A DNA stretch of 64,000 bases from Podarcis filfolensis (Eukaryota). Where the stretch lies: NCBI GenBank assembly GCA_964270895.1, contig OZ185437.1; one strand, 5' to 3'. The stretch's first letter is position 1, and every line of letters begins with the position of its first letter. The position numbers and the translations under genes are program-made. This document shows, piece after piece, positions 10,119 through 21,063 of this stretch. The notes beneath the pieces are model-generated. The model was given only the letters and a program-made list of their open reading frames with translations, ran no database searches and had not been told where the DNA came from.

Positions 10119-10384
10119 CTATCTCTTGGAGGACTTGTCTAATTTGCTGGCCGGCGACTTTCTTTGTGGAGTTGGAATTTTGGAAGGTTTTCCAGATGCT
10201 GAGCGAGAATTGGGTCGGGGTGTTGGCCTAATTGGGGTATGAACAGTCTCTGATACATCTGAGCACACAGACTGAATTTCTGAAATGTCAAAATCAGATG
10301 CGTCACTGCCCCGGCGGCTGCTTGCTCTGCTGCCAGCCTTGCTTCCTGCTCGACTTCCAGGTCTGCTTGGTGTTTTTCTGGTGT
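10119..10384 (-). CDS. DST: DST last coding exon ([15 protein letters not shown]...[21 protein letters not shown]); GSR repeats and SxIP motif (SKIP at 10173-10184)
   Basis: catgcag| acceptor; TAG stop at 10121-10119. Confidence 0.97.
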
Positions 10385-11157: not shown

Positions 11158-11281
11158 CTGCAAAATGTGCCCTGACTCTTGTAGCTGCTGTTGAAATGAG
11201 GCTGCTGTCTTCTCCAGAATGGAAACCCTTCCCAGACAGATATCCTGGCAATCTAAGTTTACTCCCTTGTATTGGAGTCCC
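11158..11281 (-). CDS. DST: DST penultimate exon ([19 protein letters not shown]...RAHFA), 124 nt
   Basis: cctacag| and |gtgagc. Confidence 0.95.
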
Positions 11282-13410: not shown

Positions 13411-13521
13411 CTCTGTGGATGACACTTGATATTCAGAGCACTCTGGAGGTTTACAGGGAGATGATGTTTTGCTGTTTATCAACCATGGTTTACCATAGTT
13501 GCGTGTTAAATGATGGGGTGT
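13411..13521 (-). CDS. DST: DST cassette exon (TPHHLTRNYGKPWLINSK...VSSTE), 111 nt, phase 0-0
   Basis: ccatacag| and |gtacag; homologous to the recalled DST segment ILHPLTRNYGKPWL. Confidence 0.88.
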
Positions 13522-13770
13522 CTGTATGGAACAATGGCAAATCACAAGGGTGAAGAACAGGCGATGGAAAACAATGTCATGGAGAGGAATATTCAGATTA
13601 TGAATACTGAATCTCACAGTAAAAGTCAAAAACAAAATGACACCAAAACAAAGCAGGAACAGTTGACAAGCATTCTATACAAAAGAGAATGTATGTGTGC
13701 TTTTTAAAATGCAATGGTGGGTTAATGGTTTTTTCATTATTGTTTTTTTCCACTTTTCTAATTAGCTTAC

Positions 13771-13797
13771 ATGTTTTTTCCCAGGCTTGCACGACCG
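13771..13797 (-). CDS. DST: Candidate DST 27-nt microexon (RSCKPGKKH), phase 0-0
   Basis: gCTAAC branch point, tttttatcgtttcctcccttacaatcgcag| acceptor, CAT|gtaagc donor; in frame between two phase-0 exons; I do not recall it from reference proteins. Confidence 0.65.
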
Positions 13798-13967
13798 CTG
13801 CGATTGTAAGGGAGGAAACGATAAAAAACTTTTGTTAGCTTTCTTTGAAAAATAAAATAACCAGTATCTCCCCTATTTGTTATAGGGTAGCATTATGGCG
13901 AACTGTAGCAAGCTTGGTCTGATTTTATTAACTGCATTAAATTTCATCTGCACCACTCCAGTCATAC

Positions 13968-14167
13968 CTTGGGTGTGCTGGCAGCAAGAGCTGATGTTGG
14001 AGTTCCTTGAGCAGGTGGATTTGACACAGACATGGATCTGTTGGGTGAAGCACCCCTTGAAGAAGGTCGTGATCTGCGTCCCCTTTGTCGGAAGGCAGCC
14101 ATGCTTTGGCTAGCTCCGTCTGCCAAAATGAATTTCTCACGTAGCTCCATGTTTGTCCTCCCTTTAG
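13968..14167 (-). CDS. DST: DST exon ([18 protein letters not shown]...ASTPK), 200 nt, phase 1-0
   Basis: cctctag| and |gtatga. Confidence 0.95.
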
Positions 14168-14327
14168 CTAGAGGATGCGAAAGAGAGAAATTGAGAAGTC
14201 TGATTATTTCCCCGTCTGCCTGTCCATATCGCTGGCTTTGCTAGAGCTAAACAAACAGGCCAAACAATTCAAACACATTAGTGAGTAATGCATTTGTTTG
14301 AGACAAAAAAAGTTCATTTGCAGAATA

Positions 14328-14401
14328 TGCGCATCTAACATTTTACGCTAGCAAAAGATGAACTGCGCATCTAACATTTTATGCTAGCAGAGATGAACTG
14401 C
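14328..14401. repeat. Tandem duplication of a ~36-bp unit
   Basis: tgcgcatctaacattttacgctagcaaaagatgaac followed by tgcgcatctaacattttatgctagcagagatgaac. Confidence 0.9.
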
Positions 14402-14964
14402 TGTCAACATAAATCAGCATGATAATGGAATGGCTCAACATGCTATTTGGTTACCAATGCACAGACTCAACCTGAAGACCCATTTGACTAATGCTACCAC
14501 TGTTTGGATGATTCAGAAACAGATGCTGGCTACGATGAGTAAACATGGAGAGAAAAGCATAAAAACCATATTAGTTCTAAGCTATATAGTAATGCAGTTG
14601 GGCAACATGCAATGACAAACAGAAACTCCCAAACTGTAAAGAAGTGATGGGATGCTGGGCACAGACAAACGCAGGTATAGAGGCAAAGGTGAGAACTTCC
14701 CACAAGGTTCAGATGCGTAAACAGGTTAGCATTTGGTTTTCTCTGTCTTAATGGCAATTGCTTTTGAAACACTCTTTCCGAGCGTGTCAAAGGAAATTTA
14801 GAAGCAAGCTCTCAAGCACCAGCCAGTGCAATAAGTGTTAAGGCTAAAAAATGTGAAACGTGAAGCGTTGTGTTAAATATATATTTGTATATATCAAAGC
14901 AGAGTGGGTAGGAAATGGAAAAGAACATTAAGAACAGGAGAGACAAAGAGAGGGGTTTGCCAAC

Positions 14965-15033
14965 CTATAGTAGGCTGAGTGGTAATTGAAGAGTTTGATT
15001 CCGAACGTAACATTTTACTCCCATGATGATGAA
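14965..15033 (-). CDS. DST: DST cassette exon (VHHHGSKMLRSESNSSITTQPTI), 69 nt, phase 1-1
   Basis: ttttctag| and weak donor |gttggc; peptide recognised from DST isoforms. Confidence 0.88.
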   Translation of the reverse strand, partial: FIIMGVKCYVRNQTLQLPLSLL

Positions 15034-17444
15034 CTAGAAAAAATGACACAGGATATGGGTCATATTAAAAGAAAATTGTTAGCAGGAGAAGAAATCAATT
15101 ACAGCAGTTGCATATGCAAGAAGATTCAAAGCTGCAGGCCGAGGACAGATCTTAAGTGATTAAAAGTTCTCGCAAAGTGTTCCTAAGCAAGGTCATGGAG
15201 TTTTCTTCAGCAAAAGAAACCACTCGTGGTGTAAGCTCAGCTGCAGACAGTCCCAATGTCATCATGTAGGTAAAAAAAAGAAAGCAAGTGGTTTCTTTGC
15301 CATCTTCAAAAAGGGAAGTTCTATCTTCATACTTCTTAAGGTTGCATGAAATGAGGACACAACATATCATACAGTGCTTTAATAGAATGAAACCTAGTCA
15401 CCATTAAGACACCCAACAGGTTTGCATATGATTTAGTTTCCACATAAGAGCTAGTGTTTCCATGGCAAATTTGATGAAGAATGCAATCTTACGTTCCATC
15501 CTTTTGAGACAGGTTTATCTCTGAAATTATGCTGTCCTTTGAAAGGGATTTTGTGGGTGAAGTACCCCACAAATGGAAAACAAAAAAATTCAGACTCATA
15601 TTCAGTAATACTGAAAATCACAAATGAACTATCCTTGCTGAAAACCTGTTTCAGAAAAAAATAATCTCTCCATATTGACTCAATTTACACATAACGCTAA
15701 ACCATGGTTTATGTTAGTGATGAGCTGTAGTGAGCTCTTTACTTCTCCCCTGCCTTGTCCTCCTCTGGTGTGGCCGCGAGAAAGGATAAGAAGCTTCTGC
15801 TTCCGCTTTAAGCAACTACAGTTTTGCATGATGTCCAAACCTAGATGTCCAAATTAACCTTAACTATGGTTTATTGAAACAAGTCATCTTCTTAAACTAT
15901 GGTCTGAAGTTGGCTTGTTTAAATAAGTGTTAAGATTAACCACATTTTGTCCAGATCCGGATGATAAAAAGCTGTGGTTAATTTAAAACAGAAGTTAATG
16001 CTTCCTCGTAGTTGTGCGGGAGGAGGAAGGGAAAGGCATAAACTACAGTAGCAGCCATCACATCTTCCATATTTGTATACACTGGTGTTGAAGAACCCAA
16101 TTCCTGTAACGGGAAGCTTGGTGATTATCAGCTGGAGATACCAGCTGTTGTTGTTTTTTAAAAGCAGCAACAATAAATATGTCAAATCAAGTACTGTTCA
16201 CCTGACTTAGGTGGAACATGGGTGGATTGTAGGCATCTCACAATGTAGGAATAAAATAGCACATGTAATGTGTTATTATAGGAGTCAATTATATTCAGTC
16301 AGAATGCTACATTCCACTTTTGTCCTGTTAAGATTCTTCAGAGTAGAGTATGAGATGGGATGATGGAATCAGGTGGATCAATGTAGGCTGTGTAACTATC
16401 TCATTTATTCCTGTACAGCAGGAATGTAAAATGTGACTCAAGCATAACATAATTAAAACAGAATTGAAGCAAGACAGGTAACATCCAGTCATATGATCCT
16501 TTACTAAACAGAAGGAATTTTAAGTTGTAGTTTCAATTGTATCTGATAAAATGGTGGCTGGATAAGTAAGCATTAGGAAAAAGAAATATATAGCCCAAAG
16601 AAGCATGTATACCACCACAACGTTTACTTTTCAGTCTGAACTTGCAGCATTACGTATAGAATTCACAGTTTTAACTACAGAGAAAAATAATCTAATATAT
16701 GCTCAATAATGTTTTCTGTAGCTACTTTTCATTTTTGAGAAATACAACACTACGTTCACCACCCCATCTTAACATTCCTTTGTACATTCACAACATAAAA
16801 CTGGGTGATGCCCTTTATATTATTCCCTCTGGGATTAGCAAGTAGTCACTATTTTACTTACCATTTCCACTGAACTTCTGGAATTTTGCCCCCCCCAAAG
16901 TGATTGCTTCACTTCACCTCTTGGTGAGCCTAGCCCAACCAATCCCATGCCTACTGCATTCTATCAACACACACAGCAGGCAGACCTAGGACCCAGAAAT
17001 GATTTCAACTAAACCCAGGCTACCCTCTTCTGTGAATCAGGTTTTAGGCTTATAAGGCTGTTAAGATGCTACAGTGAAATCTGCTTACAAATCTGGGCTC
17101 AATAGATTAGAATCCTTGGAAGATCTAGGCCACAAACCAGTGAGCCATTTTCCCCTTCAGCTGTTCACCATGAGCCAGGCTACATGTTACACTCACCATA
17201 AGAGTGGTCCCACCACAGTTTCTGCTCTTCCCCCCTCCCAACTCTGAGGGAAAATTAGCTAACAACAGAGAAAAGGGGAGATAACCAATGGACAGGAAAG
17301 AGAAACCAGCACTTCCTCCTTTCCTGTATGTGTGGTTTCTGTGTTCCTGACAGCTTTTCATTCTGTTGGTGTGAGAGAGCCAAAGAAATTCCTTGCAAGT
17401 CAACCTCTCACATGGTGAATGCAATGCATAGCCAGAGTATACAG

Positions 17445-17886: not shown

Positions 17887-18004
17887 CTCTGCAAGGATCA
17901 TTTTTCACTAAGAACTCATCAAGTGCCATCCATCCGCCTCCAACTCGAACCATAACAGTGCTCCGCAGAATGCGGACAAGACGGAGTTGCTGGGAGTCAC
18001 CAAA
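17887..18004 (-). CDS. DST: DST exon, GAR domain C-part ([39 protein letters not shown]), 118 nt
   Basis: gcacag| and |gtatgt; GAR signature VMVRVGGGW. Confidence 0.97.
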
Positions 18005-18758
18005 CTGTGCAGGAAGACAGGAAATCAAGCTCAAGGTTTCCTACAAGTTCTAAACAGCACAGTGCGCTCCAAGCCAAGAGGGTTAAAATTAGCCACGCAC
18101 AAGAAGCTCCTAAATCATTAGTAGAAAAATCACCAAAGAGTTTTGCATTATGCATAATAGTTTTCAAGTTGAATGCAACTGCATTAACCCAAAAGGTAGC
18201 AATGAGATTGGTGGGGGAGGGGAGGGAGGCAGAGCACAAGGGTATAATGCTGCTAGGTTTGATTGCCCCCCCCCCTTGATTCTTGAGAGCCACATGGATG
18301 TTTCTCAGATCTTTTCAAAGGAGAAAAATTAGTCATGTAATACAGGAAGCTAGTGTATCATGGAATTGTACTCTCAATACTAAAACCTTCACTGATCTCT
18401 CCTTGCAAAAATGATAAGAATATTTCCACCGAAATATGGATTAGAACTCATTATGAGGACACTGATCCACAGAACAAATATTACAGTGATGACCACTGAA
18501 TAAGTCAGAAAAACAAACTTTTATTGTTATTTCAGAATTTCTTTTTCACCCTCTTGCCTTCTGGAAAGCTGCCCCTTAGAATAGCCACTAAAGGGCTTTT
18601 CTAGGCAAGTGTTGTATCATGTAACAAATAGGGATCCAGTTATCTTTCTTCAGGGATGCCCTTCTTCAAGGGGTACTAATTTTTTTAGCATTTTGTGACC
18701 ATTCTCCCACACATTATGTGTATTTCTATAGCCAGTGTGAGAAGAAAGTAAGAATAAG

Positions 18759-19611: not shown

Positions 19612-19790
19612 CAGTGGTGGCGAACCTTTTAGAGACTGAGTGCCCAAACTGCAACCCAAAACCCACTTATTTATCGCAAAGTGCCAACACGGCAATTTAA
19701 TATGGGATAATAATGATTGTCTGCATGCACACATACAAATAAATAAATAAATATAAATAAACCCAGCCAGGTGGACGGGGTATAAAATAA

Positions 19791-19841
<51 letters not shown>

Positions 19842-21063
19842 TTGCTCTTTTTTGTTACTGGCACCCCAGCAGCCGCAGCACTTGTGTGTGTTGCGAAGCG
19901 GGCTGTTAGGCAGAGCGCTCTCAGGATACTTTCCCTGGATGTGGGTGTGTGGGTGTGTATAGATGTCTGTTTGTTTCTCTCTCTCTCTATGGCCCCTTTG
20001 GCGCTTCTCTCCCGAGCTTCAGAGAACAAGAGAGAAGCAGAGAGGAAACAGAGAGACAGACAGAGGACTCAGCGTGGGACTCAGGGAAACCTGTGACTGG
20101 CCCATTCACCAGGGAAGCTGGAGTCGGTATGTTGGGTTGGGGATTGGGTGGGCAGGAAGGAGAACTGAGGCTCATTGGCTTCGCAGCGTGCAGGCAGCAA
20201 GGTCTCCTGTTGTGAGGTGTCTTCAAGGAGCAGCTTGCCTCCACCCCTTCACTTCTCCCAGCCCCTCTTCATGACATTCACTCCTTCTGCACCTCACCCA
20301 CCCTCTCACTGGCTCTCCCTCTTCCCCACCCGGTCTGCACTCTCCAGAACAGGTGAAAGAGCAACCTCCTTCTGAGTTCAAAAAAAGGAGGTGGGAAAGG
20401 CAGGGAAATCAGGCTTATGCAAAAGCCAGGCAGAAGCAACCCGATGTGGCACATTGCAAAGCTGCCCCCTCTTCCGTGTGTTTTGCTTTGCACAAGCGTG
20501 GCCCAGCGTAGCGCTCCCCTCCCTGGCATGGGAGGGCAGGCTCCTTCTCCACCCTCACCCCGCTCTGCATCTTGGATCTTGAAAACAGCAGCACAGCCCG
20601 AGCCTGCTGTTTGTCCTCAAGGGTAAGAGACAGACCCTTCTGTTAATCGATGGCTAGCCGAGCTGTCGCTCCCCGCCAAAATAAAAATCCAAACCTGCTT
20701 CGGATCCAAACCCACACCATCACAACCCACTGTCTCCATGCTTCCTTACCCAGCGCCCTGTCTGTCTTAAATTGCAGCGTTTGGGGGGGGGGGAGCTGGT
20801 TGGCCAGCACACAACTCTACCCCACGCTACTGCAGGCAGTGTGCACTCTAGGGAGCGTTTCCTGCCCACATTGGCGGGGGGGGGGGGAGCTGCACATCCG
20901 CCAACCACCTTAGGGAGCGTTTCCCACCCACAATGGCAGGGGGGGAGCGGCTGTCCCTTTGCCAGCCCCCAGTAATGGCCCTGCATGCCATCTTGCGCGC
21001 ATGCTATCAGAGAGGGTTCTGAGTGCCCACTCTGGCATGCGTGCCATAGGTTCGCCACCACTG
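19612..21063. mobile_element. Non-autonomous hAT DNA transposon, 1452 bp
   Basis: Perfect 16-bp TIRs CAGTGGTGGCGAACCT/AGGTTCGCCACCACTG; perfect 8-bp TSD GTCTAAGG (19604-19611, 21064-21071); no transposase ORF. Confidence 0.93.

Follow-up and report, generated by a model that had tools for sequence, protein, structure and literature searches.

The 3' end of the dystonin gene

The window analysed here is a 64-kb (64,000-nt) stretch of DNA from Podarcis filfolensis (contig OZ185437.1) that contains no N and has a CpG o/e of 0.24, typical of a vertebrate. Judging from sequence similarity, its minus strand carries the 3' end of the dystonin gene (DST), in agreement with the first-pass annotation. 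The last coding exon matches the EB1-bound peptide of PDB entry 3GJO, named 'Dystonin' (E 1.5e-8), and the closest full-length proteins are also named dystonin; the gene was therefore assigned to dystonin. MACF1, also considered in view of the tail sequence, was ruled out by the name of the 3GJO entry and by the named homologues. The encoded features are a GAR domain, GSR repeats and, at the C-terminus, an SxIP motif that matches dystonin over MACF1. The last GAR-domain exon is identical at 40 of 40 positions to the MACF1 GAR structures 5VE9/5X57, and exon A, which is constitutive and lies directly after the GAR domain, shares 63 of its 65 residues with Podarcis/Zootoca dystonin. The coordinates of these features, together with those of the putative microexon described below, are given in Table 1.

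Table 1. Features of the DST 3' end in the window (phases are given as start-end)
Feature	Position	Strand	Length	Description
Last GAR-domain exon	17887..18034	minus		ends ...VKNDPCR at 17887; 18034 is an ORF limit only
Exon A (upstream, constitutive)	14167..13968	minus	200 nt	directly after the GAR domain; ends ...ASTPK
Microexon 3' splice region	13798..13848	minus		CTAAC branch point, pyrimidine tract, cgcag acceptor
Putative cassette microexon	13771..13797	minus	27 nt	CGGTCGTGCAAGCCTGGGAAAAAACAT = RSCKPGKKH; phase 0-0
Microexon 5' splice site	13751..13770	minus		gtaagctaatt and downstream conserved bases
Exon C (downstream, alternative)	13521..13411	minus	111 nt	phase 0-0; starts TPHH..., TPHHLTRNYGKPWLINSK...SSTE (TPHHLTRNYGKPW...SSTE)
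Exon D	11281..11158	minus	124 nt	phase 0-1; GTPIQGSKL...AHFA
Last coding exon	10384..10119	minus	266 nt	GSR repeats, SKIP (SxIP) EB1-binding motif, stop

Exon C is present in most of the isoforms fetched. It is skipped in the transcript-derived Logan fragments P0269, P0275, P0279, P0288 and P0289, and in the Varanus isoforms X10 and X27. Spliced tail fragments from several vertebrates, namely the five Logan fragments just cited and P0296, P0298 and P0302, pass directly from exon A to exon D. Elsewhere on the minus strand, the ORF listing includes about 20 consecutive Leu codons (KKSKLLLLLLLLLLLLLLLLLLLLFYF) at window positions ~19790-19850, presumably an intronic trinucleotide microsatellite.

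A putative 27-nt microexon between exons A and C

The minus strand from 13797 to 13771, read directly in the window, is cag|CGGTCGTGCAAGCCTGGGAAAAAACAT|gtaagc, and these 27 nt translate to RSCKPGKKH. With its upstream flank, the segment reads aaagCTAACaaaagttttttatcgtttcctcccttacaatcgcag|CGGTCGTGCAAGCCTGGGAAAAAACAT|gtaagctaatt, the codons being CGG, TCG, TGC, AAG, CCT, GGG, AAA, AAA and CAT. The A of the CTAAC branch point is at position 13835, 38 nt upstream of the first base of the microexon. All these elements (the 27-nt segment, the nonapeptide, the branch-point A and the canonical acceptor and donor) had been proposed in the first-pass annotation and were found again when the strand was re-read. 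The same is true of the claimed phase 0-0 with respect to the flanking exons (13968 and 13521), as exon A ends in phase 0 and exon C starts in phase 0. The four possible splice combinations, A-D, A-C-D, A-m-C-D and A-m-D (m, microexon), are all open to the natural stop. The segment therefore has the attributes of a cassette microexon: a length of no more than 27 nt, canonical AG/GT, a branch point, a pyrimidine tract and a frame that is kept whether it is included or skipped.

Splice sites were scored with a rough PWM drawn from general knowledge. On this scale, the acceptor (5.3) and donor (7.7) of the microexon score at least as high as those of the neighbouring real exons (exons A and C), and under permissive thresholds the microexon is the only strong candidate in the 446-nt A-C intron. 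Over the whole 64-kb window, equally good acceptor/donor pairs 6-60 nt apart were found six times on the minus strand (five of them in frame and open) and twice on the plus strand. Since a 64-kb strand contains several such pairs by chance, the signals alone are not beyond chance and prove little; it is the evidence from orthologues that decides whether the microexon is real. A repeat or transposon origin was not indicated by a weak test, in which the microexon 22-mer was found only once in the window, even with two mismatches allowed.

Predicted protein orthologues

When exon A was used as the query in an exhaustive HMMER search, the matches comprised full-length dystonin and MACF1 proteins and many short ORFs extending from exon A into the intron. 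A search restricted to the tail, with the Crotalus tigris protein P0002 as handle, listed 120 named proteins, all from squamates or turtles. The dystonin isoform X16 of Varanus komodoensis (P0201, XP_044277494.1) contains the sequence ...AMTPK-RSCKMGKKH-TPHHLTRNYGKPW, with the nine residues at the same exon junction, and RSCKMGKKH is the sole difference between the isoforms X16 and X17 of this species. The nonapeptide was found in 10 of the 21 Varanus isoforms fetched and was absent from the other 11. The carriers besides X16, found by opening the 90% clusters, are X1 (XP_044277477.1), X3, X4, X8, X9, X12, X13, X15 and X30. Exon C is always included too in the microexon-carrying models fetched (10, all from Varanus), and none of these shows the junction 13771->11281 listed in the first-pass annotation. 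The supposition that the peptide may exist in predicted isoforms is thus borne out by an orthologous sequence in ten RefSeq models of V. komodoensis.

The Gnomon pipeline adds alternative variants where aligned transcripts back them and, on that basis, the Varanus models would imply the existence of spliced reads. Furthermore, presence in X1 and in 10 of 21 isoforms argues that the microexon is not noise in Varanus. The predicted gene models of the Komodo dragon thus display both inclusion and skipping of the microexon.

The microexon was absent from the fetched isoforms of about 15 other squamate and 10 turtle species, the large 90% clusters having been read in part. The isoforms fetched without it include those of Podarcis, Zootoca, Anolis, Pogona, Hemicordylus, Rhineura, Elgaria, Sphaerodactylus, Paroedura, Crotalus and other snakes, and turtles. 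No insert was found at the microexon position in the MACF1-type full-length proteins fetched. The short transcript-derived fragments (66 matches, 67-213 aa) likewise contained no microexon insert, and the spliced ones join exon A to exon D, so the commonest tail form in the Logan assemblies would be one lacking both exon C and the microexon. As most squamate annotations miss the microexon, low-level use or use in few tissues is probable in the window species.

A second alternative insert of nine residues, VIYLARNLK, was observed near the N-terminus of squamate dystonin isoforms (residues 73-81). This insert separates the isoform pairs P0123/P0122, P0144/P0143 and P0184/P0183 (Crotalus, Podarcis and Varanus), and it explains most of the 9-aa length differences between annotated dystonin isoforms.

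Orthologous introns and the conservation island

Logan contigs containing the orthologous intron were reached through read-through ORFs, and the lineage of each contig was deduced from exon A similarity only. In a gecko-like contig (L002, with an exon A closest to those of Paroedura and Euleptes), the intron contains cag|CGGTCAGGCAAGCCTGGAAAAAAACAT|gtaagc, encoding RSGKPGKKH, and in an agamid-like contig (L001, with an exon A closest to that of Pogona) it contains cag|CGGTTGTACAAGACTGGGAAAAAACAT|gtaagc, encoding RLYKTGKKH. Both contigs keep the 27-nt length, the open frame, the AG, GTAAGCTAATT and the CTAAC branch point. Loss of the AG/GT or of the frame in orthologues, which had been named beforehand as evidence against the microexon, was therefore observed in neither of them. 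The sequence gtaagctaatt is identical in the window and the two contigs, and in each of these three A-C introns the microexon is the only strong in-frame candidate. Metagenomes scanned for further copies of the 27-mer followed by its donor gave 0 matches.

Pairwise DNA identities among the window and the gecko-like and agamid-like contigs are 78-89% for the microexon, 73-82% for the 50 nt upstream (with CTAAC and AG invariant) and 75-85% for positions +1 to +20 downstream. The corresponding values are 39-55% for the intron from exon A to the branch-point region (13849-13967) and 81-86% for coding exon A. In a sliding three-way squamate profile, the microexon stands out as a distinct peak between troughs, and the conservation of this island is as strong as that of the adjacent coding exon.

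The orthologous introns of two bird-/archosaur-like contigs (L003 and L008) and of a rodent-like contig (L006) are similar in length, and they contained no candidate and gave no alignment across the microexon. Bird-like introns retain only a donor-less resemblance, which reads ..CACATGAGCTAAC.. in these contigs. The microexon appears, from the introns compared, to be lineage-restricted. It was found in four lineages, which are Gekkota-like, Lacertoidea-like, Iguania-like and Anguimorpha (Varanus), and it thus spans crown Squamata. We consider it likely that the microexon dates from the common ancestor of living squamates or from an earlier time.

Other intronic parts of the locus are also conserved. 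The approximately 80 nt before exon C (13522-13600, minus strand) have identities of 0.77-0.87 across the three squamate sequences. This region aligns also to the bird-like and rodent-like contigs, window positions 13588-13402 being 75% identical to the rodent-like one; such a pattern is typical of regulated cassette exons. The intron upstream of exon A contains conserved blocks on the minus strand at 14245-14483 and 14551-15148. The three-way squamate identity is as high as 0.73-0.78 at 14483-14427 and 14332-14245, and the 604 nt of 15148-14551 are 75% identical to the bird-like contig L003. These upstream blocks probably serve the alternatively spliced DST tail as splicing elements or as regulatory elements of another kind. 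Since the locus has conserved islands in its introns that do not correspond to exons, the microexon is not proved by its conservation alone.

Constraint on the peptide and on CpG sites

In the four taxa compared (the window, Varanus, and the agamid-like and gecko-like contigs), R1, K4, G6, K7, K8 and H9 are invariant, giving a core R..K.GKKH, and positions 2 (S/L), 3 (C/G/Y) and 5 (P/M/T) are variable. The basic character is kept, with four K/R residues and a His, no acidic residue and a net charge of about +4. The window differs from the gecko-like sequence by two synonymous changes (TCG>TCA and GGG>GGA) and one non-synonymous change, and from the agamid-like sequence by three non-synonymous and no synonymous changes. 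Given the latter figures and the free variation of the middle residues, peptide constraint seems to be weak outside R1, K4 and G6-H9. The most conserved part is the purine-rich GG(G/A)AAAAAACAT|gtaagctaatt, so far as can be judged from these alignments, and constraint appears to be clearest on the 3' half of the microexon and on the splice signals. This pattern would fit a coding role of the basic GKKH end, an RNA-level role in splicing, or both.

Two features stressed in the first-pass annotation did not withstand this comparison. The cysteine had been presented as a feature of the nonapeptide, and position 3 is C, C, G and Y across the four taxa. A functional role for this residue was accordingly ruled out. 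Five CpGs within about 30 bp had also been taken as a sign of constraint. The count is four within 29 nt (13820, 13802, 13797 and 13793; span 13820-13792), with about 0.3 expected from the o/e of 0.24. Three of these four CpGs are TpG/CpA in the agamid-like and gecko-like contigs, and only that of the first codon, CGG, is kept. The CpG cluster therefore marks variable sites rather than constraint.

Alternative explanations

The conserved island could be mainly an intronic splicing-regulatory element, a decoy or pseudo-exon controlling exon C, with inclusion in Varanus as a by-product that has no protein role. Inclusion in the annotation of only one species would be expected of such an element, as would the non-synonymous changes in the central codons, and the purine-rich stretch ending in the donor could be constrained at the RNA level. 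The locus has several deeply conserved intronic blocks, some common to bird-like sequences, and the Varanus models that carry the microexon never lack exon C, which also agrees with a regulatory function. However, carriage by isoform X1 and by 10 of the 21 isoforms is unlike noise, and the exact length of 27 nt and the open frame are kept in four lineages despite indels in the adjacent pyrimidine tract. The two synonymous changes between the gecko-like sequence and the window also speak for a coding segment. On this evidence we regard a mainly regulatory island as improbable.

It is harder still to see in the segment a chance pseudo-exon, that is, an accidental in-frame AG...GT pair never spliced in the window species. 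Pairs of equal quality do arise 2-6 times per 64-kb strand, nine codons are open by chance about two-thirds of the time, and no lacertid isoform fetched includes the microexon. Nevertheless, an accident would have to coincide with an annotated orthologue at the identical Varanus junction, with gecko-like and agamid-like genomes that keep the splice signals, the branch point and the length, and with a local conservation peak between poorly conserved stretches of intron; we consider such a coincidence highly improbable. The explanation that we favour, and hold to be likely, is that 13797..13771 is a true cassette microexon of DST, 27 nt long, alternatively spliced and regulated, whose inclusion gives a disordered linker facing the microtubule an additional basic patch. 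This mini-exon of lizard dystonin is very probably real and optionally included. It is presumably also used in the window species.

Possible role and significance

Microtubule binding, bundling and plus-end tracking by dystonin are under the control of its C-tail, and loss of dystonin leads to sensory neuropathy in mammals. The insert R-x-x-K-x-G-K-K-H would land in the disordered C-tail, between the post-GAR exon A and the alternative exon C (TPHHLTRNYGKPW...), with the GSR repeats and the SxIP EB1-binding site lying further downstream. In this position, the basic patch would probably strengthen or modulate, to a modest degree, the electrostatic attraction between the tail and the acidic surface of the microtubule, without acting as an on/off switch. 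General electrostatics of tail-tubulin binding suggest that the microexon might tune microtubule affinity, a proposal that we regard as rather doubtful. A large functional effect is not expected, because the mouse tail has four variants, and microtubule bundling and binding to EB1 and EB3 were observed for every one of them (Poliakova et al. 2014, PLoS One, PMC4171495).

A broader scenario can be put forward tentatively. The microexon may be a squamate innovation in which an older intronic sequence, of which a donor-less remnant would be recognisable in birds (..CACATGAGCTAAC..), gained splice sites before the geckos split. It may then have been kept as a tissue-restricted regulated switch, with the basic patch altering lattice affinity or phospho-regulation in neurons or muscle, and annotation pipelines would largely miss the exon.

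Our literature search found no description of this microexon. It is already in the RefSeq models of one species, Varanus komodoensis, and appears to be otherwise undescribed. A practical consequence concerns microexon-aware re-annotation, since the exon is probably missing from most squamate annotations. Because the functional effect is likely to be modest and the RefSeq models of one species already contain the exon, the finding is of limited wider impact.

Comparison with known systems

The closest likeness is to the predicted RefSeq (Gnomon) models of Varanus komodoensis, in which the gene, the junction (after ...TPK and before TPHHLTRNYGKPW), the 9-residue length and the alternative use are the same. 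Eight of the nine residues are identical between the window and the Varanus nonapeptide, position 5 being P in the window and M in the predicted Varanus models.

A neuronal microexon programme, comprising exons of 3-27 nt and dependent on SRRM4/nSR100, was reportedly described by Irimia and colleagues in 2014. The dystonin microexon resembles the members of this programme in its length (27 nt, the upper limit), in keeping the frame, in belonging to a cytoskeletal gene with a key neuronal role, in placing charged residues in a disordered linker and in having a conserved flanking intron. However, unlike most members of the programme, it is not vertebrate-wide. No UGC enhancer was found in the window within positions -40 to -1 of the acceptor (cgcag), and no GCAUG in the window's intron; the acceptors of the agamid-like and gecko-like contigs read ttgcag, with UGC present.

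Mouse Dst and Macf1 have alternative C-tail exons, alpha and beta, and the GAR-GSR stretch is a documented hot spot of alternative splicing in both genes (PMC4171495). Exon C probably corresponds to one of these two exons, and the microexon resembles them in being a further cassette in the same hot spot. No orthology of the microexon to exon alpha or beta was detected, there being no counterpart in the introns of the rodent-like (L006) and bird-/archosaur-like (L003 and L008) contigs. Furthermore, mouse Dst and Macf1 possess alpha and beta, whereas the rodent-like intron has no counterpart of the 27-mer. For this reason the microexon would represent a third cassette, specific to the squamate lineage. 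Conserved across crown squamates, this third cassette would provide a dated example of the birth of a microexon in a giant cytolinker.
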